This document shows positions 4,486-37,945 of a stretch of 64,000 nucleotides of DNA, in pieces. Below the pieces are notes generated by a model. The model searched no databases. It had not been told where the DNA came from and saw only the letters and a list, made by a program, of their open reading frames with translations. The stretch lies in the NCBI GenBank assembly GCA_965202585.1, contig OZ241833.1, positions 27,528,001-27,592,000 on the forward strand, written 5' to 3'. The DNA comes from Thalia democratica. Taxonomy: Eukaryota. Made by a program: the position numbers and the translations under genes. The stretch's first letter is position 1; the number at the start of each line of letters is the position of its first letter.

Positions 4486-4516
<31 letters not shown>

Positions 4517-10500: not shown

Positions 10501-13500
10501 TTAATAAAGTTTTATTTTAGTTGTTTGTTACAGTTATATACTTTTATACTTGGTTTCTTACAAAGAGCGTTGTTGTATTGTAGTTTGCTTAAGCTTTTGA
10601 CTGGTTTATTTTATATTTAAGTATAAACAAATCTAGACCACTGGTTCAAAAACTTTATTATTGTGGACAGTAAACTACTTAAAAAAATTATGTGAATACT
10701 AGATAGATTAGTATAGGTTTTATGACCAAAAAAATATTAAGGCTGTCTTTATCATGTATAAATGCTTATTGAAAACATTCAAAAGTTAACTTTTCAACAA
10801 AAATTAGTATATGTTGTAACTAGTTTTTTTAGAAATATTACTACCCTCAAAATTTATGTGCAAAGTAAATTAGTTTCAACTACTACAGTACAAGGGTACA
10901 CTTTAGAAAATACTACAAGAGAAAGCATAATCCGTTTTTTTAATTTATTTTAGTATTACCAAGATAAAAATATTAATTCAAGACAGCAAAAAACAATTTT
11001 TTCAGGGTTGACAATAATGCGACCTCATCACAACGATCTCGGGCAAGTTTGGAAGTTGGACAAAATAGAAAGCGAAATAATCCCGCCAAATATCAGATCA
11101 CGTGACCTGCAAACCTACGACTTCTGGTTGGTTGTTTGTTTGAAGAGTTTCGTAAGAAAAAATGGTTGTTGTAACAATTTATTTTTATTTAAACTTGTAA
11201 AAAAATACGCATGCAAAGTTTTTCTAAACTAATAAAATAGAAACAGTGTACTATGTGTCTATCCTTTTCAGGAAGCCAGTCAGTGAAAAAATCTTCCAAT
11301 TCGGCCACAAAAAGGGCAGAGGACTAGCAATTGGGTCGTTGGAGCCGCCAAAACCCACACCAATGGCCCCAACTTGTCCCGATACATTGGAAGTGCGCCA
11401 ATTGGTCAGGCATCCGGAAATTTCAAACGGTAAGAAAATATCTGCAACAAAAATAATGCTTTAAAAGTTGTATTTTCTCATTTTAATCATCTTGGATTTT
11501 GACCTTTAAATTTTTAACACCTTTCACTTTCGGTTTTTGAATATATATGTGTCAATAATCTCTTAGCTGAAAGTAATGAAGTATCAACGGCTTTTTGTTT
11601 GTACTGAGATAAGTTTCAGTGCTCGACAAACATTTCCAATTGTGATTTGTTTACAATTTGCAGCTAAAATAAGTTTTGTCACCTGCCGTTGATTGCTTTG
11701 TAAATTTTCTAAACAAAACTTTTTTTGTGCTTAATTTCCTTTAATGCGCTTAAACAGACAATAAAATGTGCTTTATCAAACCTACTTGAGTTTTTTCAAT
11801 AAGAAATTTGTTGTTCCTTTCCAAGTTTTTATAAACAAGTTTAACTATGACTTAGCTATTTTTTAGGCTTGCTTTACATACCATTGAAGTTTAAATCATT
11901 TTAACAACTTATTAAATATTAAAGACAAAAGCATTTTTTATAAATTAGAATATCTAAAAAACGTCTTATAATTTTATTGTAAAAACACAAGTCAGGCCTA
12001 TTTAACGAAATACTAACGTTCAACATAAACTATTAAAATTAAGTAAAAAATAAGTACAGTTTCTATTTCATTTATGTATTTGAAATTTTTTGTTTTTCTA
12101 GTTATTCTATTAGTTTTCATACAAAGTTCATATTTTGATTCGTTTTATTTTTTTTAACCGTTATAGTGTAACACAAAAACAAATTTTATACAAAAATTTT
12201 CAACACAGAAACGCGTTCGATGCTTCAGAAGAGGTTCCTGGAGTTTGTGAGGAAGTTGTCGCGTGAGGAGATCCACAGGAAGCTGATGCAGATGGAAGAT
12301 CCGAGGGAGGAGGGAGAAGTAAGGAGGGCGGAGGATCTTCTTACCTTACTCCTCCACTACGACGACAATGTCAAAATGTTGTCTGTACGTTTATCAGTAA
12401 TATTTATTTATAGCAAATACAGGTGTTTGAGAAAGTTAGACAATTTATTGTTTAAAACATAATTTATAGTTGTCTAACATTGTTTTTTTAATATCTATTA
12501 TAACTTTTATCTTACAAAATCTGCAATGGCCGAATCATGCATCCAACTTATACGCATTGTCTAATGACACGTTTAATCGTCGACAATTCTTCTCTTTATC
12601 AAATGCAAACAACTTTCATATTTTAACTTGAATCAACAATTGAGGCCATTGTCATGTCTCTACAAAAAGTGAATCTTTTTTGATGGATTTAAAGTATCGA
12701 AATCCCATCTTTTGTCCATTTCATTGCCCATCAGTGATAGATCAAATATTTGTTTAGTCATTTGCATTTGAGCCTGGCAATAAAAAGTGGCGAAAAGTGG
12801 CAAGTGTTTGTTTTACGACACGAAATTGTTTTGTTTTCGCCGCCTAAGTGCTTTTTGTTTGGTCAGCAGTAAAGTTTGTTGGTTGGAAATTTGGGTTTTG
12901 TTTACAAACGAAAGCTTTTAATTCATCTGCTCAGCCGAAATTTAACCTGCCATTTTCTCTTACGATTAAACAAAAGTTTGTGCTTTTAAAGTCGTAAAAA
13001 ATAATTAACGTTTTTATGTCAGTCTACTTCATAGGAAGCAATTACTTAACGTTAAAGGGTGACAAATTACTTAAAAAAATTCGCTTCTTTTTTGACTCAC
13101 TATACATACATTTATTGATATAAAACTAAATTATTTAAAGATAATGCAAAACTTCTTCAACATCCAACGTAAGTGTTGCAAACTTTTTTCAGCCCCACAA
13201 GGACAGCAATGCCCCGATCGACCGCGAAGAAGAAATAGTTCCGACGAATGTTCAACCGCTAGGCGACGTTGTTTGCATGAAGCACAATTACGAGAAGGCG
13301 CTTTCACCCGAAAAACCCCCGACTCCGAGAAGGGCGTCGATTAATCTGACCAGGGAAGATTGGGATCAGATCAGAGAGGAGCTGCTGGAAGAAAGCTGCA
13401 ACAGGAACGCTCTCAGGTCGGAAAAAACAAATTATTTCAAATCTTAATTGTATGAACATGTTAAATATTTCGTTCATTGTGTTTTGGGCTCTTTTAAGGA

Positions 13501-16500
13501 AGTTAATATGTTATTTTTTATGCTGAGCGCTTTTAACTGATGTTTTTGTTCTTATCATAAAACATTCATCCAGTTTCCTTAAACTGTTTTATTCTGTTTT
13601 TTATTAATACATATAATATAGGGAAAAATTTAATAGAATAAACCATACAACCAGATATTTTAACGGTATTTTCAAAGCCATAAATATATGCTCATTTAGT
13701 GTCACAGTTGTTTGATCAGATAATTTTTTTTTTTACTTTCTAAAAACACCACATTTGTTATTATGACGTCACTATTTATTAACAGATACAAGAAAGTGCC
13801 AACGTACTTTCAGAGTGAGGAGGGCAGAGAGTGGTTACGGACGCAAACGGAGTTGCTCAACGAAGCCAGCAAGCGGCTGAAACCGCGGCAACAGATGAGC
13901 GTGTTGCTAGGCAACAACGACGAGAAGGTGTACGTGGGGAAGCACCCCATCGACAAGATGAACGTCACCAGTAACGGTAATGTGACGTCACTTTAAAGAA
14001 TTTCTTATTTTGAAGTTTTTTGTTTTTTTTTTATTATAAGTAAGATGTTTTAGCTTCTAATAACATTTAATTAAACAGCTGCAAGAGTAAAAACAATAAA
14101 AATTTTCTACTAATTTAAATTTTCTACTAACTTAAAACTGTAATTCTACTCTTAAAATAGACTTTTTATGTAAAGGTGAGTAGGTAGTATAACATATTTT
14201 ATTTGTGGAAAAACAGTTCAGCAAGTCTTAATGTTTATTGGTTTGTTTAAAAAAAAGGCAAAAATATAAAAGTTTGTATTTGTCTTTATTCCCTAATATA
14301 ACTTTAATTTTGTGTTTAAAATGTTATAACGTTATGTAAAAAATTGTTTGTTTCAAAACTAAAGCTTGCAAGTACTGAAGAAAAGTAAATTTTATTTGAA
14401 TTTTTAAGAGCTTAAACACTAAAGTATTAGTTTGAGTTGTCAAGTATTTTCAGAATATACTTTTATTTTTTAATATAATTGTTTCAGTTTTAATAATGCA
14501 AATAATTGTTAACTTTTAACGTTAATACTGATTTAATTGAAAAAGTAACCCTCAGTATATTGAAAGCATGAAATTTTGCCAAAATATTTGACCTCAAGTT
14601 AAACAGATGTTTTTTCCTTTTAAAAAATATCAGCACAACTTTAATTAACTTGCTCATATTGCTAGTTTTCTCGGGAAGCTTGCCAAAAATAAGTTCAAAA
14701 TGCCACAAACTTTCCAATTACTTTTGTATCACTAGTAGTTTCGCTTGAAGTTCAATTTTTTTTTTCTAAGCTGTTTATTATGTGAATGAACTTTTAATTG
14801 AATTGATGAATATGACGAACTAAAAACATTTTACTCAATAAAACGTACTAAAATGTATTTTTAACTTATAAACACAGCATTCTAAGCATATTTACTTTAT
14901 TTAAAAGACTAATAAAATAAGTGTATTAAATTTAAAACAACAAATTTATTATTACTAGTTAGTAAGTTAATGAAATTTTTGATAAATTATAAAAAATATG
15001 TGTTATAAAACTTTAGAGGAATCAATACTAGAAGTTAATGAACTGAGAAGAAAAAGTATGGCAGCAAAAGAAGAAAAATTACAGCGTAATTCAGGTGATT
15101 TTTATTTAAAAAATAAACATTTTACTATTACCTTTTTCCTACTAATAATTTTTGTATTTCACAGTTAATGCACAACAAAAGTCAATTTTGCAACAGATTA
15201 ATGAATCAGTATCCACTGATAATGAAAGTAAGTTACATTTATTTGTTTACAAATTGTTTTGAGACATTTAACTACAAATAAAAAGGTGTAATAATATCAC
15301 TTTTTGTTTTTAACCTTTACAAGAAAAAAAAGTTGTTTAAACACAATATTGTTTTAATATTAATCGTTTATATTAAATTTTTAACTCAATCATGCATAAG
15401 CTAAATTTTTTTAGTTTTATATGTTTAATAAATAAAATTACATGTATGCGGTTTTTAAATCAACTTCTATTTTAAACTTATTTTATAAAAGTAGAGCAAA
15501 TTAGATTATGACTTTATAAATTCAAATAGTATATCCCTTTTCGATACAAATAGTTTTATATGCAATTATATTACCGAGCAAGACCATTTTAAATTTATTC
15601 ACAAATTTGTTCGTTTTATCAAAAACCTCACAGCGAATTTTATCAAACCTTCCAAATCGATGGGAAAATTAAGAAGCATTTTGCTTTGCTGCGATGGAAA
15701 AAGTTAATCAATTTTTCGTAACATTTGCTGAATTAAAAGCACATTTTATTGATTATATTCCGCCTCTGTTTGCGTGCTATAAGGTAAATCGCAAATTTGT
15801 ATGGATTTTATAAACATTATAAAGCAGGCTTCTTATTGTATAAGTATGATATTTATTCGAGCCGATCAAAAATCAATAGAATTAATAAGCATCTCTTACA
15901 AATCTTACGTTTACTTGTTTTCTATCCTTTATTTGCATGTAGATTTCACGGTATTTACTTATTTAGTTTAATATGTAAATGTTTTAAAAAGCTACTGAAT
16001 AAATATAAGATATATTGTGTCTTAAAAACATAAACATTTTATTTGTAGTACTACTTTTTAACTAAATAGATTCGTTAAATATGCAAATTCTACCCTTAAT
16101 AAATAAGTATAAAGTATTTAATTTAAACTTAATTATTGAATTACTTTTACCTTTAAATAATTCGTTATATAAATTGCTTTCTATACTAAATGTAAGTTAA
16201 AACGTTTTTTTTTCAACTAATTTAATTTATCTATTTACAGAACCTTATAAAGAAAATGGTGAAGTTTTATCAAATCAAGCTACAAATGGATCTACAAAAC
16301 AAAGAGGTTAAAAATATGTTGATAGTTTTTAAACTTCCTTTGAAAATACTTAATTATTAGCACATTCTAATGATTGTAATCAAAGTTAATAATACCTTTG
16401 ACTTTTGTACGTTTTTTAGACGTAGCCTTTATTAATCTTACTAAAGTTAGATTTAATTTCCTAAAAAAATAAAAAGAACTAAAAAGTTAATGTTAAAAAG

Positions 16501-18617
16501 TACAGAATTTTTAAATACAGAAGTTTGATAGTTCAATAAAATTAAGTTTATGAAAAACAAAATATTTAAATAATAGTTGAGATTATTAATCACATAAATT
16601 TTGTTTTTTAAAACAGTTTTTAATTCAAACTTAATTCTGTACTAACGTTGTAAATAACGATCATAAGTAAACTGATATAAATTTTTAAGGACTAAGAGAA
16701 TTCATTAAAAAAATATTGGATACAAAAATGATCTTCCAAAAGTTAAAACTATTAAAAATGAAATGAAAAATAAAATCTTCATTTGTTCAGATTCAACATT
16801 CATCAATTCGAACGTCGAAGAAAACTTCCCCGAAAACAAAAATCCACCTCCGCCGTTGGAAACCGACGCGTTGCCTGGCAACGACGACGAGTGGAAGCAG
16901 CGGCGCTTCGACGTCATGAGCTGGCCCAATGACGTCATCGGTCCCCGCAGGAGCAGGCACCCGGTGGCACCCCCCATCGGCCGCCAAACGCAGGCGAGGC
17001 CCATCGACAGCGACGAGCACATTTTGAGGGATTTCTACCGGCAGCGGCGCCCCGGAGAAGTAAAGATGAATAAAACGGAAGCAGTGGTGCAGAAAGGCGG
17101 CAAAGTTAAAGGGGAGAAAGGCGTTAGTGACGTCATAATGCAGTCGCTGCTCGCTTTCAAGCCCAACGCGGTGCCAAACACCAAGGTATGTTGTGACGTC
17201 ATATCTATCTTAAATATCTGTTTATTTTTATTGTTTTGTTTTAGTATATAGAAATAGAGGAGCCGGTAAGAAAGCAGGTGAACAATGTGTCCATAGCAGG
17301 ACCAATAAGCAAGGGAAACATGAAAGTTATGAAAAGAGGAGTAGAACTTCATCCTAGACAAGTAATATTTTACTTCAAATTAAAACTAGTTGATCAGGAT
17401 TTTTTTTTTATTTAATGAAGTCCTGTAACAACTTTTTTAAATTTGATACATTTCAATATGAATTTAACTATTTAATCTTTGATTTTTTTAATTTTTAAGA
17501 CCATCTAGATTCTATAAATTATCATTTTTCTGGATCTATTTACTTTAGCATTTATTTTTTATTTTTAAACAGAAATAACAAAGCTAGTTTGACAAACTAA
17601 TGGGCTATGAAGTACTAAACAAAAAATTTAATTTTGTTTCAGTTGAATCTGGGAAAATTGGTGGAAGGTAAGATGTATTGCTGCACATTCAGGATTCGAA
17701 ATGTTGGCATCGATACCATCAAATACCGAATAAAATCCCCGCCAGTCAACACTGGAATCCGAATCAGATACGCTCCTAAAAAAGTTGGTTTCATTTTTGC
17801 AAGTTTTTGTAAACAACTTTTTGTTATGTATTTTCTGCAATAGGGAAATTATAGATAGAAGTTTAATAGTAGTAAAATATGAACAGAATGCAACAAATAG
17901 TTGTTTTAAATCGAATATGTTTAACAATTTTTTAAAGTCTAAATTGTTAGATGATTTAAGTTTTATAGATTTGAAATAACATTCACGGCTGTATATGCTA
18001 AAGTCTGATAAGTTTCTACCGTATGTATACAGCTCGTTATCGCACAAGTCGTCAAGTTAAGTATAAATTCTTTTTGAATATCAATAAAAGTGTTCTTATT
18101 TTTAAAACAAAAACTTTTAAAGATACCAGCCGGTTTGGAGCAGAAAGTAACGATAGATATTTGTGCGATTGCACCGAATGTGCTAGTTGGAGATATTGTT
18201 GGAAGTTTGAACTATCAGCTTCAAATTATTGCTGAAACTGAAATTATTCACCTTCCAATTCGAGCCACTATTCTTTTATGTAGTTTATTTTATCATTTAT
18301 AGTTATCTTACAAATCAGGAGTTCTTTGTTCTTCAAAAACTTTGTATTATCGTTGTTTTTATAGTTGTGTTTTATTTAAGTTGACTTTAAAACTTAAGAA
18401 AAACCTTGACTACCTATGCATACTTTATACATGAAGTTATTTTAAATTTTGCAGTTTAAATAAAACAATGAATAATAATGCACTAATTAGTTCTAATATT
18501 TTAATTGTAACAGCAAACGCGTACAACACCATTGAAAATGAAGAGGAAAAGTGTGCAGTTGTCAAATTTAATTCAAATGTTGATGTCAAATCTTGTGTTT
18601 CTGGCGATATGGTGTAA
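3313..18617 (+). CDS. SPAG17: SPAG17/PF6-like central-pair protein, C-terminal half only (module A; 22 exons, no 5' half within the unit)
   Basis: Exons assembled from AG/GT sites with consistent phases: 3313-3431, 4633-4747, 5302-5428, 5773-5914, 8356-8470, 8597-8730, 9004-9234, 9376-9518, 10331-10470, 11006-11126, 11272-11429, 12209-12384, 13193-13416, 13786-13976, 15017-15094, 15165-15227, 16241-16306, 16791-17185, 17245-17361, 17643-17783, 18123-18279, 18514-18617 (TAA). Total 3,257 nt, one open frame. Recognised SPAG17-type motifs: SRVIMYDGTVVKNMKDGSTQ, VERPDGGLVCDHEDGTRIT, PPRLFVVKNDGSGYELLR, IIPPNIRSR, YIEIEEPVRK, and the C-terminal Ig/PapD-like domain FRIRNVGIDTIKYRIKSPPVNTGIRIRYAPKKIPAGL...IIAETEIIHLPIRATIL. 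The family call is from memory of the human protein, not a search. Confidence 0.88.
3743..4014 (-). mobile_element. Penelope-like-element fragment with inverted partial terminal repeat (foldback), copy A only
   Basis: 68-bp inverted arms at 3743-3810 and 3947-4014 with 3 mismatches. The left arm carries the hammerhead and then AATAAA (minus strand, 3743-3748) next to TA repeats. It is absent at the same intron position in B, C and D. Confidence 0.6.
3771..3818 (-). ncRNA. Second minimal type I hammerhead ribozyme motif
   Basis: Minus strand reads GCUGG-CUGAAGA-C UAAG GCGUCUAGU CUUA U-GAAA-C ACGU G-UA/CCAGU. It has a CUGAnGA core, GAAA, palindromic stem III ACACGUGU, a GUA triplet, and 5-bp stem I GCUGG:CCAGU. 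The stem II closing pair is a C-U mismatch. Confidence 0.65.
4092..4492 (-). mobile_element. Penelope-like-element / retrozyme-like 3' fragment carrying a hammerhead, copy A only
   Basis: Lies between (TA)8 at 4077-4092 and (TA)12 at 4493-4516. On the minus strand it has a T-rich tract, then the hammerhead, then AATAAA (4097-4102). No ORF. Absent from B, C and D. Confidence 0.6.
4116..4160 (-). ncRNA. Minimal type I hammerhead ribozyme (Penelope-like-element type)
   Basis: Minus strand reads UUUGAAG-CUGAUGA-GUG CAUAGA CAC-GAAA-C UCGA G-UC/CUUUGAG. It has an intact catalytic core, stem II GUG:CAC, a 2-bp stem III with palindromic ACUCGAGU, a GUC cleavage triplet (cut between + positions 4123/4122), and stem I UUGAAG:CUUUGA. 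Confidence 0.85.
4493..4516. repeat. (TA)12 microsatellite
   Basis: Read directly. Shorter TA runs occur at 4077-4092 and around 3730-3740. Confidence 0.9.
6105..6330. promoter_or_regulatory. Conserved non-coding block 3 (intron 4), Fox/homeodomain/E-box motifs
   Basis: CAGCTGATTGAT, TGTTTGCAGTAAACAAA and several TAATT(A/G) motifs. Conserved in B ~25085-25400, C ~44445-44760 and D ~63375-63720. Confidence 0.5.
6510..7420. promoter_or_regulatory. Conserved non-coding block 4 (intron 4), promoter/enhancer-like motif cluster
   Basis: ATCAATCA 6654-6661, CACGTG 6660-6665, CCAAT 6681, TGACGTCA 6860-6867, CTGTCA 6900-6905, CCAAT 7227, palindromic ATTGGCCAAT 7240-7249. Conserved in B ~25560-26400 and C ~44900-45790. 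Confidence 0.55.
11560..11790. promoter_or_regulatory. Conserved non-coding block 5 (intron 11)
   Basis: Conserved in B ~30540-30770 and C ~49875-50095. Contains TGTTTAC, CTAAACAAA and TGTCACCTG motifs. Confidence 0.45.
12535..13060. promoter_or_regulatory. Conserved non-coding block 6 (intron 12), Forkhead-motif-rich
   Basis: Many TGTTT(A/G) sites, including AAATATTTGTTTAG and TGTTTAC (12899-12905). Conserved in B ~31610-32120 and C ~50940-51450. Confidence 0.5.
14510..14750. promoter_or_regulatory. Conserved non-coding block 7 (intron 14)
   Basis: Conserved in B ~33615-33835 and C ~52895-53125 relative to flanks. Confidence 0.35.
15620..15960. promoter_or_regulatory. Conserved non-coding block 8 (intron 16)
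   Basis: Conserved in B ~34700-35040 and C ~53975-54320 relative to flanks. Confidence 0.35.
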
Positions 18618-18703
18618 CTAAGTTGGTTCAACTGTAGTTTTTTTATGACTCGTGTTGTCACTGATAGTTCCAAACGCTTTATCGATTAATTTTACAGTTT
18701 CAG

Positions 18704-18750
18704 GTTTAAGCTGTGGACCCATCAATCAGAAAAATGTTAGACAAAAATGA
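18704..18750 (+). CDS. Putative terminal exon 23 of module A (G-LSCGPINQKNVRQK*)
   Basis: Conserved block behind a tttcag acceptor in all three full units (B 37801-37838, C 57094-57140). It is in frame if exon 22 is spliced at TCT G|G(C/T)GAT. The donor is GT only in copy C. Confidence 0.45.
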
Positions 18751-18823
18751 TGAAAAACTAAAATGTTTGTTCCTATTCACTTTGTTTTTATCTAACTTTT
18801 ATTTTTCACTGTGTTTTTTGTGT

Positions 18824-18857
18824 AATAAACTCTTTACTGTGTTTTTTATGTAATAAA
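18824..18857 (+). terminator. Polyadenylation signals of module A (two AATAAA in a short ~28-bp duplication)
   Basis: AATAAA at 18824-18829 and 18852-18857 amid TG/T-rich tracts, ~200 nt after the exon-22 stop. Confidence 0.5.
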
Positions 18858-21800: not shown

Positions 21801-23133
21801 TTGTTATTTTTTCATATCTGTTTAAAACAATATAACAATTGATTAAATTCGATAAAACTTCTACAAAATTATAATAATCAATTTTAAAACTGTTTACTTA
21901 ATTTACTTTACCAAATTTTTACAATTTGCATCGAATAATAAATTTATTTAATTGATTAAAAGTTTTTCATAAACTAGAATTTGTATAAAAATTTTAATTT
22001 TACAAATTTATAATGAAACATCCTGTTCAGTAATTGGGTTAAAAATTCGATTCAGCAAGCTTCAAAGGCCGCACTTGACTTTAACTTCCATTCTTAATAC
22101 GCGAGCCACTTAAAAACAATTTTAAATTAATGAGAAACACGCAAGTTTATTGCGAGCAATTAAATTCTGGCTGATTATATGAAAACAAAGTTGTGAATGA
22201 CGCAAGATAAAAGGTGAGAAATTTTCACTTTGATCACAAGTTTGCACCAAAAGCTCTGTATGCTTTCTTAATATAGTTTTGTTAAGGTTTATGAAAGTTT
22301 TGAAGCCAAATCCTCGTGTTTTGAGCACAAGTTTTTACTAAAAGGGGGAAAGTTGTTATTGTTGTTCGCTGGTTCATTGCTTGCCCCACTTGATAGTTCA
22401 ACAACCCTTCATTTTTTGTGAAGGCTGAAGTTGTCTGCCTCAAGTCGAGTGTAATTAGCAGCAACTTGCTTTGTTCAAATCTACCAAGTGTTTAAAGCTG
22501 CACTTAAATAAAGCAGCTAAGAATATATTTGATTTTTGGCTGAATGAATCTTGTGTGCTTGAGTCAAGCTTTGCAAGTTGAGAAATTCAATTAATGTTTG
22601 AAAATATTATTAGTCATTTTTTTTTACTTTAATAATTGTTTTGAAACAATGTCTTTAAGATATTATTAGGTTTTGAAAAAATAACATGTTTAATAAAAGT
22701 TTCAGTCTTTTTAGATATTGACTTATATTATTCTAGATATTTTAAATTTACTATTTGAGTTGATTTTCAACTTCAAACTAATTATATACTTGTCCTAAGG
22801 ATTGGTTTGTAAACAAAATGCGCATGTTAAGTTTATGTGTACTAAATGTTCAAATACAAATAAAACAAAATAATTTATTTAGTAAACTAATTAATCTTCA
22901 TGAAATGATTAAAAGCAGAACAACCTACTTATAGTTTATGTTTTGAAATGAATACCTTACTTTAATAATAAGTATAGTCTAATTTTAAACAGTTTGAAAT
23001 GTTTAGTAAAAATTAATAATAACCTCGATTTCTCATAACCTTTTGTTCTGTTATTAATTGTTTCTTATAATATATATCTTATTTATAAACTTCACCAAAC
23101 ATACTTGTATCTAACTTGACAATTTTACGATAG

Positions 23134-26100
23134 GTGAAGTTTTTGGGCCAACTGTGAGACAGTATTACCCTCAACCAATAGGAGAAGAGATTTCCAGAGT
23201 CATTATGTACGATGGAACAGTAGTGAAAAATATGAAGGATAGTTCAACACAAGTCAGATTAATTTTTCTATATATATAGTTAATCTGGGTTTAGTTTAAG
23301 TAATGAGTCGATTTTTTTTTATATTGACAAAACATATTTTTACTTTAAGAAAAACAACTATAATAAAAATAATTTCTACAATTTAATTATAAAAATTTTT
23401 ATATATATAAAACACGCATGGTAAAGTTGTTTATACTAAAAAATTTTACAAAAAAATACTTTATCTAAGTTCTTAAACCTCTTTTTCAAAGCATCAAAAT
23501 GTTAAATATTTTGTAATATATTTGTAAACAATAGAAATATGCACTTAAATATTTCTACTGTTTACATTAAATATGAAACCATAAACCAAGTTTTATCTGA
23601 CTTAATGAATCTTCATATGATCACTTAAACCTGAAAACATTTTATGTACAGATTTTATGTTTGGACGGAACAGTTCACACAGCAGGTTTCGATGAAGGTA
23701 ATTACCCTAAAGACGACCAAAAAACCCCTAATTCCCCAATTTATGCTGGGGACAGTTACAAAAAGAGTGAGTTTAACTTATATGTTTCTGAATTAGAATT
23801 CTACTTATCTCTTAGGAGGATTTAGCAGGATTAGTTTTTTAAGCTCAAAATTTAAATAGTCTATCCAGGTTCATATTAAAGGCAACATAGAATTCAACAA
23901 CAAAAGTAAGTTGTTATCATCGATGTTTCTGACTATTGTTTCGTCGTTATTTGCAGCAACTATTAAAGCAAAAATAATATTTAGAAATAAATTTTAAAAT
24001 AAAACCATACATAGTGACATACTTTCGATATAAATTACTAAAACAACTTGAATTTATTTATTTTTTACTAGTAAAATCACAGAAAAAAAGCCTAAGTATA
24101 AGTACTAATTCATTATATTAAAGTTACTGGGAAATCAACTTAAAATAAATCATAAAAATTTTCATTTATCAAGTTTAACGCCGAATTAAAAACTCAATAG
24201 CGGTATTGTCAAAAGAGTTAAGAGTTAATCGTTAAAGAATTATTTCAAAGCTTTTCTTTGTTGCTATCACCCCTTTTCATCGCCACTCGAAAATCTTTCA
24301 CTGCAATTAATTTTCTCACGACAGACTCTGTGGTGCAAGGGGGCGTTGTGAAAGGAGGAAATGGGAGAAAATCCAACGCAAAGGAGGAGAAAAGGGCCTC
24401 CAACTCGCACCGGAATCCAGCAGTTTACCTCCAACCATCCGATATATACAAGTTTATAAAACTGTTAATTTTAAAAAGAAATTACTAAACTATAAGTTCT
24501 AAAACATTTATAAAGTCTTTGCAACAATACATAAAAACTTGTAAGTAAATCTGCATGTTTCGCTTTTAAGTTGTAAACTAAAAATATATTGAAAACCCAT
24601 TAAATTTCGGAAACCCTCTATTTTTCTTGAGTTAATTCATTTAACTTTAAAACTCATAAATGACAGGATGTTTAAAAAAAAAGCAGTTTTTTTAGATATA
24701 GTAGTAATTTCAATCAAAAATAAAATAATGAAATACTTAACATTTTCTTCTGATACATTATCTTTTTATTCTAACTAATTAACCAATCACAGATTGGATA
24801 ACGGAGATCATACGGACCACTTGTGGCAGACTACGTCAATATGCGGTGACGTCAGCATCACGTGCCACAACAAACCTTCTCAGCCAATCACCAAGCGAGT
24901 TTGCTACGTCGCCAAGGACCCAATCACTAGAGAGGTGAGTTTGAAAAAAAAGCAAATTGTTATTTTATTTAAAAACAAGATTAGATAAAACAATATTTTA
25001 TATTTCCTAAAGATGGCAGTAAAAAATTCAAACATCAACACTCATTTGGTAAAAAGTTTTTTAGGAAAAAACGAAAGGTTTTCAATATTAAATCGAGCGG
25101 CACTAATCCCAGCTGATTGATCCTTTTCTCTTGTTTCAAACAAAATCTTGTTTGCAGTAAACAAATAGTTTATGCTAAAATCGCCATCTATTTTGCCGGT
25201 AATTACCTTCACTTTGCTAGCAATTGTTACCCCAAACAAGCTTACAAAAATCCTATGAAGTTCAACTCAAATTGACATTAATTTTAATTGCTTTGTCTGC
25301 CTTATTCATGCGTTAAAGTGCATTAAATTGCATTTGAACTGCTTTAATTTTGTCTTCAATTTATAAGATAAAGTTTCATAGTCGGTTTAATTGACTTTTT
25401 ATTCCATTTTAGTATCTTGTAAGTTTTTGTTGACAGTTAAATTATTTTAAATACTTAAAATATCCTGTATTTCAAGTTAGAAATTTTTTAACTTTAAACT
25501 GTTTATCCTGTTTTTATTATCAATAAATTTTACAGCGCATAAATTATTTTTCTTCAATTTAACAAACTTTATAAATTTGAAAAGTACTAAAAAGAAGTTT
25601 TTTATAACAAGTAGATTTTCGTGTTCTTTTAACTACTTGCGGGTCAATATTTACTTGTTTAATTTTTATCAACTTGGGGTGAATAACACAAGGGGTCAGC
25701 AAATCATCAATCACGTGACTGTTTGAGCGTAACCAATCACATCGATTCAATCTTCTGACAAAAACAAATTGCATCAAAAAATAGTTGATCTGTTTCGCAA
25801 TTGGTGTCAGCTCGCTAATTCAATTTGCTTTTTCAGCTGCTATGAGAAAAAAATCCCCTTTAAATCCAATTTGTTTGTGGCGATTCGATTTCACGGCGTG
25901 ACGTAAAAATGTGACGTCACAACTAGCAGATGCGCGATTCCCACCAGCAGCCTGTCAACTTTCACACACATGAAAGCATAAAAATTTGAGATGACCCTCG
26001 AAATGTTTGCGCGTCTTTTGTCATCGCCGCCCTCAATCCAAACACTAAAACCTGACTTGAGCGACTTTTTATATTATAAGCCTTGTTTTTTGTTTTATTT

Positions 26101-29100
26101 TCCGAATAGTGTTTTGTGATGCCGTCGAGCTAAATTTTAATCTATCATCATAAACGCGCTCATGTATGATCTAGAAAGAGGTTATAAGCTGCATTTTGAT
26201 TGATTAGTTGAAGTCACTGGTGTGTGACGGACCAATTGACGGTGATTGGCCAATTTCAAAGTGACAATATCGTGCCAAACGTTATTATGCCCAGGTGCAA
26301 TTTTTCTATCTGCAGTTGCAAATATTATCTGATGTAAAAATATCACACAACTATTTCAAGTAGCTTGTTGTGATTTTCAAAGGGTTGTCAAGTGTGGGCT
26401 ATTAAAATTTCATAATAATGTATAGATAGTTTGAATTTTTATTGCAAGTTTAACAAATATAAAACTAGTTGCAATATATTGGGTAACAAAGTTATAAATA
26501 TTTTTGCGCAGAATTGGATATGTGAAGCGAAAATGTTTGTAATTGATAAATTCGAATGTTTGCATACAAACGAAAACTTATGATTTATTTATAATTTCAA
26601 ATGTTATTAATTGCTTTGAATATGTTTCTGTACTTTCAAATTCTTTTAGCTACTTTCTGCTTTAAGTTTAAAAACCACCGAAAAGTATTAGCATGGAGTA
26701 AACTTTTCAAAATTTGTAAAAGCAAAATTTTGGTTATTTATTTTTTAAGAAAGCAATTGTATAATAAATTATAATTGTTTAGTTCAATGAAAATTTTACT
26801 TATACAATTCGTTTTAAAAACTCCTGTTAAGGACATTTTTTAGAAACTTATATAAAAAATGTTGATAAACCTGTTTTTTTTTAACTTAATGAAAGATATA
26901 GAAAGCTCCGTAATCATTTTTTAATTATTTTTAGTTCTTAAGTGTGTAAATATTGTTGATTTATATATTAGTATATGTTGTAGAAGTATTTGTAAGTGTA
27001 GATAACTTAGTTTTAATAGTTTAACATTATTGTATTTACCTTTAAAATTTCTCTCAATGCAATCAAAATTTTGTAACATAAAGTAAAGTTTAAGCATTGA
27101 AAACTTTCCTTCTTGAAAAGCTGTTAGCTAAGCTTGGAGTCTAGCTTTAGTAAACTTAAAGATTTAAAACTATATTACATAAAACAACTTTTTTATTAGT
27201 ATATGTTTTACAAGTATTTGTAAGTGTAGATAACTTTGTTCCAAGGTAATTTAATATAATTGTTTTTACTTTTACTTTGAAATTAAATCAATACATTAAA
27301 ACAATAAAATTTTAAAACACAATATTTTTCCCAGGTAATGTACAGTTTAGAGGACAGTACAGTTCTGGTTGAAAGACCTGACGGTGGACTGGTTTGTGAC
27401 CACGAAGACGGAACCAGAATAACCAAATTTTTCACCTACGACCAATTCGGTTAGAATTTTTTAAATATTTAATCTCTAAGGTATTTTTTGTTTTAAGCAT
27501 TTTCTGAAACACTCCTTATTACAAGGTAAAGTATAAAATAAAGTTTCTGAATACTAATTTTATGTTTTTTTACAGGCCACATAGTATGGCTGGTTCGAGT
27601 TGAATGTGAAGGATTTGCCACTGTCACATTCGATCTGTCAAATGGCGAGTCCATGACCTTATTTGGAAGTGGTACAACTCTGTCCATGTCTCAGGATCAG
27701 GACTACAAGGTTTAAACGGTTTTATATAGTTTTCTTTTAATTAAAGATACTAGTTCTGCTATTATTTAGGCGTGTGAATCTACTAATAACTGTTTTAATA
27801 GTTTTTGTTTTGTTTTTACAAAAGCTCAAGTTCAGATAAATCAATTAAAAATAACTAAACCTATTTAAAATAAAAGCACCAAAATTATTTTTTGTTTACC
27901 ACAAAAGAAGTTCCAACATCAAATATTAAATAAACAATCAAACAAAGGTTGTTTATTAAAATTAAACCCAAACAACAACAGCTGTCGCATTGGACGGGGG
28001 GAATCTTCGTGCTTTCCCGCGGCGGCACCGCCCTCTACCGACCTGCCCCCGAAAGCCCACCGGCCAGGAAGCGATCGGACACGGACATCAGCAGGGAGAA
28101 CGTCGGGGGTGAGGAGAACTTCTCAGGCGAGGAGGAGCAGGTCACTTATTTGTTGCGTCACAATGACCCCGTCTGCTTCGAAATGAGCGACTTCGACGGC
28201 AACGTTTTTCAGGTTCAAGTTTTGTTTTTTTATAATTTATTTATTTTTATATCAGTTTAAAGTTTTTAAAGCATTTACAAACTGTCAAGTAATTTTTTTA
28301 AGCACAAAAAAAATATCCACTTTTTCTCGAGCTAAACAACTTTCTCCCCACAGATCAGGAACAACGGTTGTGTGACGTCATACAACGCGCATCAGGGCTG
28401 CGTGGAGGAATATGAGGACGAGGAGGGGGAAAACCCTACAATGAATATCGAGGGTCAGCAAAAATACCTGAAAAAATACTCAAAACATCCGCCCAGGTGA
28501 AAATATTTGAACATTGGTTTGACTTATTTTAGAAAGATAAGTAGAGGTTTTTAATCAAAACTGTAAAAATGTAAGGCGAATCTATTTTTTATTTACTGAA
28601 CAATTTGTTAAGTATTTTACAACATTTATATTTTCTTATTTTCAAAATATTTGCTTTAAAAATCTATAAATGAAAACTTAATTTAACTACCTTACGTACA
28701 AGTTAAGAACAGGCTTAATAAAATTTAGTTTCCAAGGACAAAATAATGAACCAGAATTTGCTTTTCTGCTGAATAGGATTAAAAACTCTTAATTCAGTTT
28801 TGTTATGCCGTTAAAATTTCATGCTGCGTAGATGATTTAAAAGTGCAAGTATTTTTGTTCTTTGTGGGAATATTTTTAAAGCAGTGTTTTTGAGTAATCA
28901 ACTGCTACAAGAAAGAAAAATTAAACATCTTTAAATAAATTTTAACGCGGCGCAACATTATATAAAATTTATTTCATGGTTGTAAAGTCATCATCAAAAG
29001 TAATTTATTATCAGTAGTTTAAAACGTTTCCTTGAAAATTTATTAAACATTGTTTAAATACATTTTAAATTTTGTAATAGTTCGTTTAAAGTTTGAATAA

Positions 29101-32100
29101 ATGTTTCTTTTTTTCGTTCAATAGAGAAAACATATTTTTGTAACATATTTTTCTCATAAATTTGTAGTTTTGTCCACAGAATTTGCTAACTAAATGAACA
29201 AAAATAAATAAACTTTAAATATCAAATTAGAATATGTGAAACTAAAAGTTTAAAGTTGTGTACTCTAAAATAAACAAACTAAAGTGCTTATTCTTTTTTT
29301 GCAGATTATTTGTAGTCAAGAATGACGGAAGCGGATACGAATTGTTACGTCATAGTGACGTCAAACCTTCCATACAGGCTGCCGAATTGGACCAGTTCAC
29401 TGCTGTTGTCAAGGACCAGTTGCTAGGTGACACAACTGCAGTTGGTACGTTGCACTCATACATCAATTGCTAAACTAATAAAATTTTATTTTAATTGTTT
29501 GTTGCAGTTATTTACTTGTATACTTGGTTTCTTACAAAGAGCGTTGTTATATTGTAGTTTACTTAAGCTTTTGACTGGTTTATTTTATATTTAAGTAAAA
29601 ATAAATCTAGACCACTGGTTCAAAAACTTTATTGTAGTGGACAGTAAACTACTTAAAAAAATTATATGAATACTAGATAGATTAGTATAGGTTTTATGAC
29701 AAAAAAAATATTAAGGCTGTCTTTATCATGTATAAATGCTTATTGAAAACATTCAAAAGTTAACTTTTCATCAAAAATTAGTATATGTTGTAACTAGTTT
29801 TTTTAGAAATATTACTACCCTCAAATTTATGTGCACAGTAAATTAGTTTCAACTACTACAGTACAAGGGTACACTTTAGAAAATACTACAAGAGAAAGCA
29901 TAATCCGTTTTTTTAATTTATTTTAGTATTACCAAGATAAAAATATTAATTCAAGACAGCAAAAAACAATTTTTTCAGGGTTGACAATAATGCGACCTCA
30001 TCACAACGATCTCGGGCAAGTTTGGAAGTTGGACAAAATAGAAAGCGAAATAATCCCGCCAAATATCAGATCACGTGACCTGCAAACCTACGACTTCTGG
30101 TTGGTTGTTTGTTTGAAGAGTTTCGTAAAAAAAAATGGTTGTTGTTACAATTTATTTTTATTTAAACTTGTAAAAAAATACGCATGCAAAGTTTTTCTAA
30201 ACTAATAAAATAGAAACAGTGTACTATATGTCTATCCTTTTCAGGAAGCCAGTCAGTGAAAAAATCTTCCAATTCGGCCACAAAAAGGGCAGAGGACTAG
30301 CAATTGGGTCGTTGGAGCCGCCAAAACCCACACCAGTGGCCCCAACTTGTCCCGATACATTGGAAGTGCGCCAATTGGTCAGGCATCCGGAAATTTCAAA
30401 CGGTAAGAAAATATCTGCAACAAAAATAATGCTTTAAAAGTTGTATTTTCTCATTTAAATCATCTTGCATTTTGACCTTTCAATTTAACACCTTTCACTT
30501 TCGGTTTTACAATACATAGTTGTCATTGACAGAAAAGCTCTAAGCTGAAAGTAATGAAGTTTCAACGGCTTTTTGTTTGTACTGAGATAAGTTTGAGTGC
30601 TCGACAAACATTCCAATTGTGATTTGTTTGCAATTTTCAGTTAAAATAAGTTTTGTCACCTGCCGTTGATTGCTTTGTAAATTTTCTAAACAAAACTTTT
30701 TTTTGTGCTTAATTTCCTTTAATGCGCTTAAACAGACAATAAAATGTGCTTTATCAAACATACTTGAGTTTTTTCAATAAGAAACTTGTTGTTGCTTTCC
30801 AATTTTTTATCAACAAGTTTTACTATAACTTAGCTATTTTTTAGGCTTGCTTTATATACCATTGATTTTTAAAACATTTTGACAATTTTCTAAATATTAA
30901 AGAAAAAACAATATTTTCTTATTAAAATATCTATAAAACGCCTTATATTTTTTTGTTAAAAGAAAATTAAGCACAATTTAACAAAATACTAACATCCAAC
31001 ATAAACTATTGAACTTTAGTAAAAAATAAGTACAGTTTCTATTTCATTTATGCAATTGAAATTTTTTGTTTTTCTAGTTATTCTATTAGTTTTCATACAA
31101 AGTTCATACTTTGATCGCTTTATTTATTTATTTTTTTACCGATATAGAGTAACATAAAAACAAAATTTTCACAACAATGTCCGCACAGAAACGCGTTCGA
31201 TGCTTCAGAAGAGGTTCCTGGAGTTTGTGAGGAAGTTATCGCGTGAGGAGATCCACAGGAAGCTGATGCAGATGGAAGATCCGAGGGAGGAGGGAGAAGT
31301 GAGGAGGGCGGAGGATCTTCTTACCTTACTCCTCCACTACGACGACAATGTCAAAATGTTGTCTGTACGTTTAACAACAATATTTATTTATAGCAAATAA
31401 AGGTGTTTGAAAATTTAAGGACAAACATTTAATTTTAGTATTTATATATTTTTTTTAATGGAATGTATGTGTAATACCTAGTATTATTTTAATATTGCAG
31501 TACTTTTTACTAATATATGTTTTATTGTTTGTCGTTATGATTTAAATATTGCTCATATGCCTCATTATACTTTCAATAGTTTTTAACGTTCAAAATCTAA
31601 AACAGCCAAGTCATGCATCCAACTTATACGCATTGTCTAGTGACACGTTTAATCGTCGATAATTCTTCACCTTATCAAATGCAAACAACTTTCACATTTT
31701 AACTTGAATCAACAACTGAGGCCATTGTCATGTCTCTACAAAAAAAGATGAATCTTTTTTGAAGGATTTAATGTAACAAAATCCGTTTTTTTGTCCATTT
31801 CATTGCCCATCAGTGATAGATCAAATATTTGTTTAGTCATTTGCATTTCGGCCTGGTAATAAAAAGTGGCGAAAAGTGACAAGTGTTTGTTTTACGACGC
31901 GAAATTGTTTTGTTTTCGCCGCCTAAGTGCTTTTTGTTTGGTCAGCAGTAAAGTTTGTTGTTTGGAAATTTGGGTTTTGTTTACAAACGAAAGCTTTTAA
32001 TTCATCTGTTCAGCTGAAATTTAACCGGCCATTTTCTCTTACGATTAAATAAAAGCTTGTGCTTTTAAAGTCGTAAAAAGTAATGAAAGTTTTTGTGTTA

Positions 32101-35100
32101 GTCTACTTAATAGGAAGCAATTATTAATGTTAAGGGGTGACAAGTTATTTTAAAAATGCGACTCTTAATTGACTCAAAATACATATATTTATCGTTATAA
32201 AACTAAATTATTTAAAGATAATGCAAAACTTCTACTAGATCCAACGTGAGTGTTGCAAACTTTTTTCAGCCCCACAAGGACAGCAATGCCCCGATCGACC
32301 GCGAAGAAGAAATAATTCCGACGAATGTTCAACCGCTAGGCGACGTTGTTTGCATGAAGCACAATTACGAGAAGGCGCTTTCCCCCGAAAAACCCCCGAC
32401 TCCGAGAAGAGCGTCGGTCAATCTGACCAGGGAAGATTGGGATCAGATCAGGGAGGAGCTGCTGGAAGAAAGCTGCAACAGGAACGCTCTCAGGTCGGAA
32501 AAGACAAATTATTTTAAATCTTAATTGTATTTACATGTTAAATGTATGTACTAGGGTGAATCTGTTGCCCCGACCTAAGAGTTCCTAAAAAACTAGGAAG
32601 TTCCTACGTTAATTTTTATTCTGAGTACTTTTAACTGATGTTTTTGTTGTAACCATAAAATATATAGCATTCAGCTAATTTCCTAAACTGTTTTTACTCA
32701 ATTTTTTATTAATACATATATTAATGGTAATAACTTAAGTAGTATACACCATATAACAAGATATTTTTAACGGTATTTTCAGAGTCATAAAAATTTGCTC
32801 ACTTAGTATCCCAGTTGTTTGATCAATCGAAAAGTATTTTCTTTTTTTATAAAAACCACACATTTGTTGATATGACGTCACAAATCATTAACAGATACAA
32901 GAAAGTGCCGACGTACTTTCAGAGTGAGGAGGGCAGAGAGTGGTTACGGACGCAAACGGAGTTGCTCAACGAAGCCAGCAAGCGGCTGAAGCCGCGGCAA
33001 CAGATGAGCGTGTTGCTAGGCAACAACGACGAGAAGGTGTACGTGGGGAAGCACCCCATCGACAAGATGAACGTCACCAGTAATGGTAATGTGACGTCAC
33101 TTTAAAGAATTTTGATAAAATAATTTAAACTTTTTGAATTTTTCTTTTTAATATGAGCAAGATGTTTTAGCTTTTAATAATTATAATTGATTAAACAGCT
33201 GCAAGAGTAAAAACAATAAAAAATTTCTACTAAGTTAAAACTGTAATTTTATTTTGAAAATAGACTTATTAAGTAAAAGTGAGTAAGTAGTGTAACATAT
33301 TTTATTCGTGGAAAAACAGTTCAGTAAGTCTTGATATTTATTTATTTGTTTGAAAAAGAGACAAAATATAAATCTATATGTGCTTCTACTTTTTAGTCTA
33401 ATTATTCATTTTGGGTATAAAGTTTGATAAACGTAATGTAAAAAATTGATTGTTTTAAAAACCAAATCTGTAAATACTGAAGAAAAGTAAACTTAGTTTG
33501 AAATTTAGAATGATTAAACATTAAAGTATTACTTTGAGTTGTCAACTACTTTCAGAACATTACTTTTATATTTATAGATAATTGTTTCAGTTTTAATAAT
33601 TGCAAATAATTGTAAATTTTTAACGTTAATACTGATTTAATTGAAAAAGTAACCCTCAGTATATTGAAAGCATGAAATTGTGCCAAAATATTTGACCTCA
33701 ACTTAAACAGATGTTTTTTCCTTTTAAAAAATATCAGCACAACTTTAATTAACTTGCTCATATTGCTAGTTTTACTTCGGGAAGCTTGCCAAAAATAAGT
33801 TCAAAATGCCACAAACTTTCCAATTACTTTTGTACCACTTTTAGTTTAAGGTTAACTTTTTTTCCAAGCTGTTTATTGTGTGATTGAGCTTTTAATTGAA
33901 TCAATGATAATAACGAATTATAAGTGTTTTACTTCTAAAAAGCGCATGAAATATTTTTATGACTATAAACACAGCATCCTAAAAATGTTTACTTTGTTTA
34001 AAAGACTAACAAAATAAAGGTATTATATTTTAAACTACAAATCTATTATTAATAGTTAGTTAGTTAATGAAATTTTCGATAAATTGTGAATAACATGTGT
34101 TATAAAACTTTAGAGGAATCAATACTAGAAGTTAATGAACTGAGAAGAAAAAGTATGGCCGCAAAAGAAGAAAAGTTACAGCGTAATTCAGGTGATTTAT
34201 ATTTGCAAAAAAAACATTTTAGTATTACCTTTTTCCTACTAATTAATTTTATATTACACAGTTAATGCACAACAAAAGTCAATTTTGCAACAAATTAATG
34301 AATCAGTATCCACTGATAATGAAAGTAAGTTACATTTATTTGTTTACAAATTGTTTTGAGACTATTCACATCAAATAAAAAGATATATTAATAAAACTTT
34401 TTGTTTTTATCAGCCTTTACAAGAAAAAAAAAATTGTTTAAACACAATATTGTTTCATTAATAATAGTTTATATTAAATTTTAACTAAAACATACATAAG
34501 CTGAAATTTTATAGTTTTATATGTTTAATAAATAAGTGTACTTCCAAGTATGCGTGATAAGATCATCTTCTATTTTAAACAAGGAAATTAGATCACGACT
34601 TTATTAATTCATATAATGTATCCCATTTCGATACAGCTAGTTTTATATGCAATTTCATTACCGAATATGAGGATTTTGAGTTTATTCACAAAATCGTTCA
34701 TTTTATCAAAACACTCACAGCGAATTTTATCAAGGCTTCCAAATCGATGCGAAAATTAAGAAGCATTTTGCTTTGCTGCGATGGAAAAAGTTAATCAATT
34801 TTTCGTAACATTTGCTAAATTAAAAGCACATTTTATTGATTATATTCCGTCTCTGTTTGCGTGCTATAAGGTAAATCGCAAAATTGTATGGATTTTTATA
34901 AAATACATTACAAAGCAGGCTTCTTATCGTATAAGTATGCTATTTGTTCGAGCCGATCAAAAATCAATAGAATTAACAAGAATCTCCTACAAATCTTACG
35001 TTTACTCATTTTTTATTCTTTATTTGCATGTAGATTTCACGGTATTATTGAATATAATATGTATATGTTTGAAAAAGCTACTGAATAGATATAAGATATT

Positions 35101-37714
35101 TCATGTCTTAAAAACATAAATATCTTGTCTGTAGTACTACTTTTTAACTATGTATATTCGTTGTATATGCGAATTCTACCCTTAATAAACAGGTATAAAG
35201 TTTTTGAACTTTAGACCTTTTTCATTTAATTACTTTTACCTTTAAATAATTTGTTAAATAAATTGCTTTCTATACTAAATGCAAGTTAAAACGTTTTTTT
35301 TTTTCAACTAATTTAATTTAATCTATTGACAGAACCTTATAAAGAAAATGGTGAAGTTTTATCAAATCAAGCTACAAATGGATCTACAAAACAAATAGGT
35401 TGAAATATTTGATAGTTTTTAAACTTCCATTGAAAATACATAGTTATTAGCACATTCTAATGATTATAATCAAAGTTAATAATACCTTTGTATTTATAGA
35501 CGTAGCTTTTGTTAATCTTACTAAAGTTAGATTTAATTTCCTAAAATAATAAAAACAACTAAAAAGTTAATGTCAAAAAATACAAAATTTCTAAATACAA
35601 AAGTTTGATAGTTCAATAAAATTTAGTTTATGTAAAACAAAATATTTGGATAATATTTGTGATATTAATCACACAAGTTATGTTTTTTAAAACAGTTTTT
35701 AATTCAAGTTTAATTCTGAACTCAAGTTGTGAAATAGAGATCATAAGTACACTAGTATAAATTTTTAAGGATTAAGAGGATTCATAAAAAAAATATTAGA
35801 ATCAAAAATAATCTTCCAAAAGTTTTAAAAATTTACGTTTAAGCTACCAAATATGAGAAAAAAAAAATCTTCATATGTTCAGACTCAACATTCATCAATT
35901 CGAACGCAGAAGAAAACTTCCCCGAAAACAAAAATTCCCCTCCGCCGTTGGAAACCGACGCGTTGCCTGGCAACGACGACGAGTGGAAGCAGCGGCGCTT
36001 CGACGTCATGAGCTGGCCCAATGACGTCATCGGTCCCCGCAGGAGCAGGCACCCGGTGGCGCCCCCCATCGGCCGCCAAACGCAGGCGAGGCCCATCGAC
36101 AGCGACGAGCACATTTTGAGGGATTTCTACCGGCAGCGGCGCCCCGGAGAAGTAAAGATGAATAAAACGGAAGCGGTGGTGCAGAAAGGCGGCAAAGTTA
36201 AAGGGGAGAAAGGCGTCAGTGACGTCATAATGCAGTCGCTGCTCGCTTTCAAGCCCAACGCGGTGCCCAATACAAAGGTTTTTTGTGACGTCATAACTAT
36301 TTTAAATATCTGTTTATTTTTTTTTGTTTTATTTTAGTACATAGAAATAGAAGAACCGGTAAGAAAGCAGGTGAACAATGTGTCCATAGCAGGACCAATA
36401 AGCAAGGGAAACATGAAAGTTATGAAAAGAGGAGTAGAACTTCATCCTAGACAAGTAATGTTTTACTTCAAACTAAAACTATTTGGTCAAGATTTTTTTT
36501 TTATTTAATGAAGTTTTGTAACAATTTTTTTAAATTCTAATACATTTCAATTTAAAACTAATTAATCTTTAGTTTTTCCCAGAATTTAAGACCGTCTAGA
36601 TTCTAGAAGTAAACGTTTTTCTGGATATATTTACCTTAGCATGTTTTATTTTATTTTAAATAGACATAACAAAGCTAGTTTGACAAACTTATGGACTATA
36701 AAGAACTAAATAAAATGTTGATTTTGTTTCAGTTGAATCTTGGAAAATTGGTGGAAGGTAAGATGTATTGCTGCACATTCAGGATTCGAAATGTCGGCAT
36801 CGATACCATCAAATACCGAATAAAATCCCCTCCAGTCAACACTGGATTACGAATCAGATACGCTCCTAAAAAAGTTGGTTTCATTAAATTGTCGCAAGTT
36901 TTTGTAAACAACTTTTTGTTATATATTTTCTGCTATCGGGGAATTACAGATAAAAGTTTAATAGTAGTAGTAAAGTATGAACAGAACGTAACAAATAATT
37001 GCTTTAAATCGAATATGTTTACCAATTTTTTTTTTTAATTGTTATATGATTTAAGTTTTATAGATTTGAAATAAGATTCACGGCTATATGTGCTAAAGTC
37101 TGATAAGTTTTTTTCCGTATGTATACAGTTATCGCACAAGTTGTCTAGTTAAGTATAAATACTTTTCAAAGATCATTTTTAGTCTTTTTTTTTAAACAAT
37201 AACTTACAAAGATACCTGCCGGTTTGGAGCAGAAAGTAACGATAGATATTTGTGCGATTGCACCGAATGTGCTGGTTGGAGATATTGTTGGAAGTTTGAA
37301 CTATCAGCTTCAAATTATTGCTGAAACTGAAATTATTCACCTTCCAATTCGAGCCACTATTCTTCTATGTAGTTTATTTTATTATTTTGTAATTATCTAA
37401 CCAATCACGACGTTATTTGTTCTTAGTCCTCAAAAAACTTTGTAATATTGTTGTTTTATAGTTTGGTTTTATGTAAGTTGAATTTAAAACTTAAGGAAAA
37501 GCTTGATTTATTAAAGCATACTTTATATATTTAATTATTTAGATTTTGCAGTTTAAATCAAAAAATCAATAATAATGTACTATTTAGTTCTAATATTTTA
37601 ATTAAAATAGCAAACGCGTACAACACCATTGAAAATGAAGAGGAAAAGTGTGCAGTTGTCAAATTTAATTCAAATGTTGATGTCAAGTCTTGTGTTTCTG
37701 GCGATTTGGTGTAA
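23134..37714 (+). CDS. SPAG17: SPAG17/PF6-like C-terminal half (module B; 22 exons)
   Basis: Exons 23134-23252, 23652-23766, 24325-24451, 24793-24934, 27335-27449, 27576-27709, 27982-28212, 28354-28496, 29305-29444, 29979-30099, 30245-30402, 31189-31364, 32270-32493, 32895-33085, 34114-34191, 34262-34324, 35333-35398, 35883-36277, 36338-36454, 36733-36873, 37212-37368, 37611-37714. Every exon has the same length as in module A and splice sites are kept. No frameshift or premature stop was seen. Confidence 0.87.
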
Positions 37715-37945
37715 CTAAGTTGGTTCAACTGTAGTTTTTTTATAACTCGTATTGTCACTGACAGTTCTAAACACTTTATCGATTAATTTTATAGTTTTAG
37801 GTTTAAGCTGTGGACCCATCAATCAGAAAAATGTTTGACAAAAATGATGAAAAATCAAAATCTGTGTTTTTTGTCGCTTTGTTTTTATCTAACTGTATTT
37901 TTCACTGTGTTTTTTGTGTAGTAAACTCTTTACTTTGTTTTGTGT

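Follow-up and report, generated by a model that had tools for sequence, protein, structure and literature searches.

How can a genome keep several intact copies of one gene that all lack its 5' half, and how could such copies be expressed? Partial duplicates without a promoter and a start codon normally decay. We analyzed a 64-kb stretch of the Thalia democratica genome (contig OZ241833.1 of assembly GCA_965202585.1, positions 27,528,001 to 27,592,000; referred to as the window), in which at least three 5'-truncated copies of a cilia gene, by homology SPAG17, have stayed intact over a divergence of ~0.07-0.10 per synonymous site. A first-pass annotation of the window had proposed that a single upstream 5' half is spliced to one or another of several alternative C-terminal modules. 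We slightly favor, and only tentatively, a different reading, in which each unit would be its own transcription unit and the array would amplify a C-terminal SPAG17 product.

A tandem array of SPAG17 3' halves

Self-comparison of the window reveals that its whole length is a head-to-tail tandem repeat with a period of ~19.0-19.4 kb, comprising at least four units that are 88-92% identical, introns and spacers included. Each unit is a 5'-truncated SPAG17 copy that consists of the last 22 coding exons, an exon in the 3' untranslated region (UTR), its own AATAAA polyadenylation signal (kept in modules A, B and C), and a spacer of 4.2-4.5 kb. We built gene models for the modules using as a guide L001, a metatranscriptome contig from a relative (see below). 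Each full module has 23 exons, of which 22 are coding (3261 nt) and the last is the 3'-UTR exon; the 22-exon modules of the first-pass annotation were right for the coding exons and missed the 3'-UTR exon, which lies behind a 76-nt intron. Exon sizes are the same in A, B and C, the introns are GT-AG in 66 of 66 cases, the open reading frame of 1085 codons is intact in all three, and the 3 x 23 exons contain no frameshift, stop or lost splice site. Given a match of positions 6-2192 to the other units' spacers, the array may continue upstream of the window.

By homology, the array gene is SPAG17, a C1a central-apparatus protein of motile cilia. Three exons match mouse SPAG17 (solved-structure chain 9ijj_x, 2320 aa) in collinear order: exon 1 at residues 1298-1326, exon 9 (at 29305) at residues 1659-1696, and exon 20 (at 36733) at residues 2180-2229 with E = 1e-6. 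On its own, the exon at 36733 gives a weak hit to the PapD-like/ASH Ig domain (PF14874), with E = 0.0021 and 18.7 bits, under the Pfam cut-off of 27; precomputed annotation places the same domain on P0001 and P0048, two spliced relatives. An exhaustive profile-free search with this exon led to P0001, which is 90% identical and whose 90% cluster includes P0048, a full-length SPAG17 of 2382 aa encoded on the 7373-nt contig L001. The closest named relatives of P0048 are ascidian SPAG17 proteins, from Clavelina (33% identity over 83% of the query) and Phallusia (36%).

L001 nucleotides 3954-7372 align exon by exon with every module, and the 1085 codons of a module correspond to P0048 residues 1294-2382. 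The 5' half (L001 nt 1-3953) has no blastn match in the window, and P0048 residues 1-1293 have no tblastn match anywhere in it at E <= 10. By these searches, no unit carries a SPAG17 5' half within the window. Homology of the modules spans the C-terminal 45% of SPAG17/PF6, including a putative PapD-like/ASH Ig domain near the end; this C-terminal part binds SPAG6 and is enough for partial rescue in Chlamydomonas (PMC7999657). The window differs from known SPAG17 genes in holding the 3' half only, four times, whereas those genes are single units, with 49 exons in mouse (PMC7648611).

Selection on the individual copies

Pairwise ratios of non-synonymous to synonymous divergence (dN/dS) are 0.12 for A-B, 0.09 for A-C and 0.10 for B-C, with dS of 0.07-0.10. 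Exon dS is about equal to the divergence of the 3' UTRs (8-11%) and of the introns (~11%). We polarized the substitutions private to each branch with L001, and counted 19 synonymous and 9 non-synonymous changes on branch A (omega 0.13), 12 and 10 on branch B (omega 0.23), and 24 and 8 on branch C (omega 0.09). Each of the three branches departs from neutrality (P <= 7e-4), which argues that A, B and C are each separately under purifying selection at the protein level. Because their private changes show this synonymous bias, the copies are not dead duplicates. We rejected a decaying partial duplicate, or pseudogene, as a description of the modules: frames and splice sites are whole, and omega lies at 0.09-0.23 rather than near 1. 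From this selection we deduce that the units are probably expressed and of use to the animal.

The proteins encoded by the modules differ at 20-23 of 1085 residues and are ~98% identical, so the array as sequenced does not diversify the SPAG17 C-terminus; a set of proteins this similar looks like dosage rather than diversity. When the 3' half of L001 is compared with the modules, dN/dS is ~0.33, three times the ratio between modules, which would reflect either relaxed constraint on the L001 lineage or tighter constraint on the amplified copies.

Partial tandem duplicates, alternative-3'-exon loci and spliced-leader trans-splicing are all already known. What appears unusual here is an array of 15-kb, 22-exon half-genes, each of which lacks its own 5' half yet is under purifying selection. 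If half-genes are selected, the genome must have a way to express them; candidates are the capture of an orphan acceptor by a spliced leader, an internal promoter, and the sharing of one 5' half. Whichever route applies, the locus is informative on how genomes with trans-splicing cope with segmental duplications and put them to use and, should the products be confined to the C-terminal half, on the role of this half of SPAG17 alone in cilia or sperm.

Exon 1 and possible expression as independent units

L001 joins a 5' exon onto exactly the exon-1 acceptor, at nt 3953/3954 and in phase 1 (G/GT). Because the full-length mRNA of the relative attaches the 5' half at this point and in this phase, exon 1 is, on this comparison, an ancestral internal phase-1 coding exon. 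The residues ahead of its first ATG are translated in L001 and align to mouse SPAG17 coding sequence (QPIGEEISRV to PPLEQEASRV). The phase-1 junction leaves exon 1 in need of a start codon and one further base from an upstream source, if its own in-frame ATG is not used. This ATG, at offset 71, is the first in the exon; no earlier one occurs there.

The first-pass annotation had described the ~27 nt before exon 1 as near-invariant, a Val codon upstream of the ATG as varying only synonymously, and the frame ahead of the ATG as fully kept, and our alignments bear this out. Copies A, B and D share the same 27 nt, from which C departs at position -5 alone (a G-to-A change); the branch point that the annotation placed in this stretch, at a CTAAC, is a putative one. 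The Val codon is GTG in A, GTT in B and C, and GTA in D, and holds the sole variable base among the 71 pre-ATG nucleotides. The frame is open back to the acceptor in all four copies.

This conservation of exon 1 is more than chance would give, but part of it is plain recent common descent, because the window is a 19-kb tandem repeat with 88-92% identity that extends to introns; what goes beyond descent is modest. Copies B, C and D are near-identical also over 200 nt further upstream of the acceptor region. Among A, B and C, the -27 to -1 stretch contains one variable site, matching the best-kept of the other 22 introns (range 1-14). Scored with a matrix made from the gene's own acceptors, the exon-1 acceptor reaches 4.0 bits and ranks fifth weakest of 23; it is weak, not exceptional.

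Upstream of exon 1, the spacer falls into two parts that differ in divergence. The distal part is ~20% diverged, and the ~1.9-kb proximal part, next to exon 1, shows only 5-6% substitutions in all copies, half of the 11-12% seen in introns. This proximal spacer looks regulatory, and is a candidate promoter or splicing control element. Within it lies a near-invariant, relatively GC-rich core of ~235 nt, which has no clear open reading frame, contains combinations of an ATG with a phase-1 donor, and holds a 14-bp long-range inverted repeat (GTCTCGGT.GAAGC paired with GTTTCC.ACCGAGGC). We rejected the possibility that the core encodes an RNA: Rfam gives no match at E <= 1, there is no tRNA and no covariation, and its folding z-scores against shuffles are 0.15 and -1.1.

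In the reading that we slightly favor, the conserved ~2 kb that precede exon 1 would drive transcription of each unit. The primary transcript would carry no upstream donor, and the orphan exon-1 acceptor could acquire a 5' end in one of two ways. In the first, a spliced leader would be trans-spliced onto the exon-1 acceptor, and the product would be a ~120-kDa C-terminal SPAG17 translated from the first AUG, an in-frame one with no other AUG ahead of it. In the second, a small first exon would be encoded in the spacer. Either way, the array would yield more C-terminal SPAG17 product, not alternative tails for one 5' half. We favor independent units because A, B and C are equally constrained, each has its own polyadenylation signal, the region upstream is conserved, and the products are near-identical.

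Spliced-leader trans-splicing is active in tunicates, where a donor-less acceptor is a normal substrate; such a leader would make a truncated duplicate capped and translatable, with the first AUG in frame. In Ciona, outron-bearing genes undergo spliced-leader trans-splicing (PMC1488885). Compared with such genes, conservation of the 71-nt leader here would be unusually high. The 5' end of L001 carries no Ciona-type leader.

A SPAG17 product limited to the C-terminal half is, by analogy, biologically plausible. A 97-kDa mouse SPAG17 isoform is recognized by a C-terminal antibody (PMC7648611), and truncations of PF6 that retain a sub-C-terminal part rescue pf6 mutants (PMC7999657). The mammalian isoforms (97 kDa, processed to 72 and 28 kDa) resemble the predicted products in being C-terminal-only and detected in testis with C-terminal antibodies (PMC7648611), but differ in arising by splice variation and proteolysis from a single gene, not from amplified genomic half-copies. 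Among tunicates, the transcript-derived SPAG17 of Phallusia mammillata (P0062, 1199 aa) starts with a Met at the equivalent of residue ~1204 and comprises the C-terminal half only, being either a truncated model or a genuine tunicate C-terminal isoform. The start of P0062 precedes the module boundary by ~90 residues.

The protein and contig collections yielded two transcripts related to the modules, L001 and L002, neither of which is identical to any module. Each is ~95% identical to A, B and C, and the two are 93.75% identical to each other; with these values we rejected them as proof that different modules are expressed. They most likely derive from sibling species or populations, and would then be uninformative on which module is used.

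Several points weigh against independent units. The use of spliced leaders in this genome is assumed from tunicates generally, and the conserved spacer may just as well regulate splicing. Moreover, the conserved ATG-to-donor combinations of the spacers include no convincing first exon: 28 combinations of an ATG with a phase-1 donor are kept in three or more spacer copies, and combinations of this kind are frequent by chance. The neatest of them loses its GT in the C-D spacer. The strongest conserved donor (41563) was also rejected, as a stop precedes it by five codons in the frame that would be needed. Among B, C and D, only 1 of the 71 pre-ATG sites is variable, compared with 8.2% of 2103 adjoining non-coding sites (binomial P = 0.017) and 3.9% of adjoining coding sites. 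Conservation of this kind, with synonymous changes only, is unlike a 5' UTR and lends modest support to translation from an upstream exon. The first-pass annotation had argued on these grounds that the pre-ATG segment is still translated; its coding-like conservation offers that proposal some backing, but other non-coding parts of the units are equally conserved. Finally, a search of sequencing runs returned no RNA run that holds the locus, and metagenome scans with a protein pattern and an exact exon-1 25-mer found nothing, in a collection that evidently does not include the metatranscriptomes holding L001 and L002.

A possible shared 5' half and other explanations

A single SPAG17 5' half could instead be joined, by read-through in cis or by trans-splicing of the mod(mdg4) type, to any of at least four near-identical 3' modules of 15 kb and 22 exons. 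We consider this possible but, on balance, unlikely. If true, these would be the largest alternative 3' modules known, kept by selection against faulty products and not by a gain in diversity. The join between a 5' half and a module is seen in L001 only, from a relative. A word search over this junction had a sole match, a genomic contig with exon 0. On L003, a genomic contig of a related genome from an ENA metagenome, exon 0 is 94.9% identical to L001 nt 3820-3955 and is followed by 1.8 kb of the next intron. L003 shows no similarity to the window.

In the cis form, which we judge rather improbable, one promoter and one 5' half would lie upstream of the window, and a pre-mRNA that runs through the polyadenylation sites of the proximal modules would have its exon-0 donor spliced to one of the four exon-1 acceptors (A, B, C or D), making the 3' halves mutually exclusive. 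The junction in the relative's full-length mRNA, where a phase-1 internal exon 1 is joined to a 5' exon, fits this arrangement, as do pre-ATG codons kept like coding sequence, an acceptor that is conserved in all copies, and selection on modules that have no 5' half. The acceptor is also weak, as many regulated acceptors are. However, every module keeps an AATAAA signal, and the distal modules, 19-58 kb further away, would lose to co-transcriptional splicing of the first module, yet A, B and C are equally constrained. A choice among ~98% identical products has no obvious use. In a limited test, the 1.8 kb of L003 intron that follows exon 0 showed no complementarity to the spacers beyond that of shuffles.

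The trans form would have the modules transcribed from their own spacer promoters, and a 5'-half transcript, made separately, would supply the donor for trans-splicing to the exon-1 acceptor. It would reconcile a promoter-like spacer, equal constraint on the modules and a coding-like pre-ATG segment, and the mechanism is established for mod(mdg4), whose 3' exons come from independent promoters (PMC6237743, PMC13490949). We nevertheless regard it as distinctly improbable: gene-specific trans-splicing of this type is rare and unknown in tunicates, the 1.8 kb of L003 intron after exon 0 contains no strong U1-type motif, and the modules are undiversified, unlike mod(mdg4) tails.

The comparison with mod(mdg4) and lola in Drosophila holds in part. 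As at those loci, several acceptor-led 3' units stand behind conserved upstream sequence, perhaps with promoters of their own, and one 5' part may be shared (PMC6237743, PMC4387717, PMC13490949); the four 3' units here each start with a conserved phase-1 acceptor. The Drosophila tails, however, are 1-2 exons long and strongly diversified, with different C-termini, whereas the units here are 15 kb long with 22 coding exons, encode ~98% identical proteins differing at the 20-23 residues noted above, and would have their common part outside the window. The first-pass annotation had instead drawn an analogy to the protocadherin and UGT1A clusters. These are likewise tandem paralogous units that could share a constant part, but there it is the 5' end that varies, among diversified units whose variable exons each have a proven promoter. 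We set this analogy aside, as near-identical, equally constrained modules with their own polyadenylation signals and a conserved upstream region fit independent units at least as well.

We give little credence to a single working module accompanied by silent partial duplicates that gene conversion overwrites. Divergence along the units is indeed a mosaic: A and B differ by 2-4% at 28162-30136 (versus 9180-11160), where A-C and B-C differ by ~10%. By this pattern, neighboring units exchange sequence, and the segment is a recent gene-conversion or unequal-exchange tract between A and B. But gene conversion cannot account for the strong synonymous bias seen among the substitutions private to A, to B and to C. 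Exon dS of about the same size as intron divergence shows that most exons have not been recently overwritten, and frames and splice sites are undamaged throughout the three modules.

Serial use of the modules, in which exon 21 is spliced to exon 1 of the next module and the terminal exons are skipped, would give a giant SPAG17 with repeated C-terminal halves. Exons 1-21 total 3153 nt, a multiple of three, and exon 21 ends in phase 1, so the join would be in frame; such a fit has a 1 in 3 chance, though, the terminal coding exon 22 and the polyadenylation signals are conserved in every module, and no such transcript is known. We therefore rate serial use as highly improbable. An assembly artifact, whether false tandem copies or stacked haplotypes, is scarcely credible, since the introns of the copies are 8-12% different, some insertions are private to single copies, and two runs from the same organism (possibly the source data) contain 0.61-0.62 of the words sampled from a module-spacer-module stretch.

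The coordinates of these features are collected in Table 1.

Table 1. Positions of the SPAG17 modules and associated elements in the 64-kb window
Feature	Positions	Strand	Details
Module A	3313..18831	+	23 exons; intact 1085-codon open reading frame; stop ~18615-18617; AATAAA at 18824 and 18852
Module B	23134..37927	+	23 exons; intact 1085-codon open reading frame; stop ~37712-37714; AATAAA at 37946
Module C	42476..57241	+	23 exons; intact 1085-codon open reading frame; stop ~57005-57007; AATAAA at 57214 and 57251
Module D	61439..64000	+	runs off the 3' end of the window; exons 1-4 intact and in frame
Exon 1, module B	23134..23252	+	phase-1 internal SPAG17 exon; relative's residues ~1294-1333; first ATG at exon offset 71; copies 3313-3431, 42476-42594, 61439-61557, each 119 nt, AG/GT
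Acceptor region before exon 1, module B	23107..23133	+	copies 3286-3312, 42449-42475, 61412-61438; a single site varies among the four copies
Conserved proximal spacer upstream of module C	40506..42359	.	candidate regulatory; copies 767-2588, 21150-23019, 59457-61324
Near-invariant ~235-nt core, relatively GC-rich	40535..40770	.	copies ~795-1030, 21176-21410, 59485-59722
Spacer-like sequence upstream of module A	1..3312	.	positions 6-2192 match other units' spacers

The window has a G+C content of ~28% and no runs of N. An Rfam scan of its whole length at gathering thresholds gave no family match, hammerheads included. Unit A carries two specific insertions, one at 2588-3188, ~125 nt upstream of exon 1, and the other at 3738-4484 in intron 1. 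The 76-nt intron of the 3' UTR begins 4 nt past the stop codon in all full modules (18622-18697, 37719-37794 and 57012-57087) and in the relative's mRNA, and is too near the stop to trigger nonsense-mediated decay.

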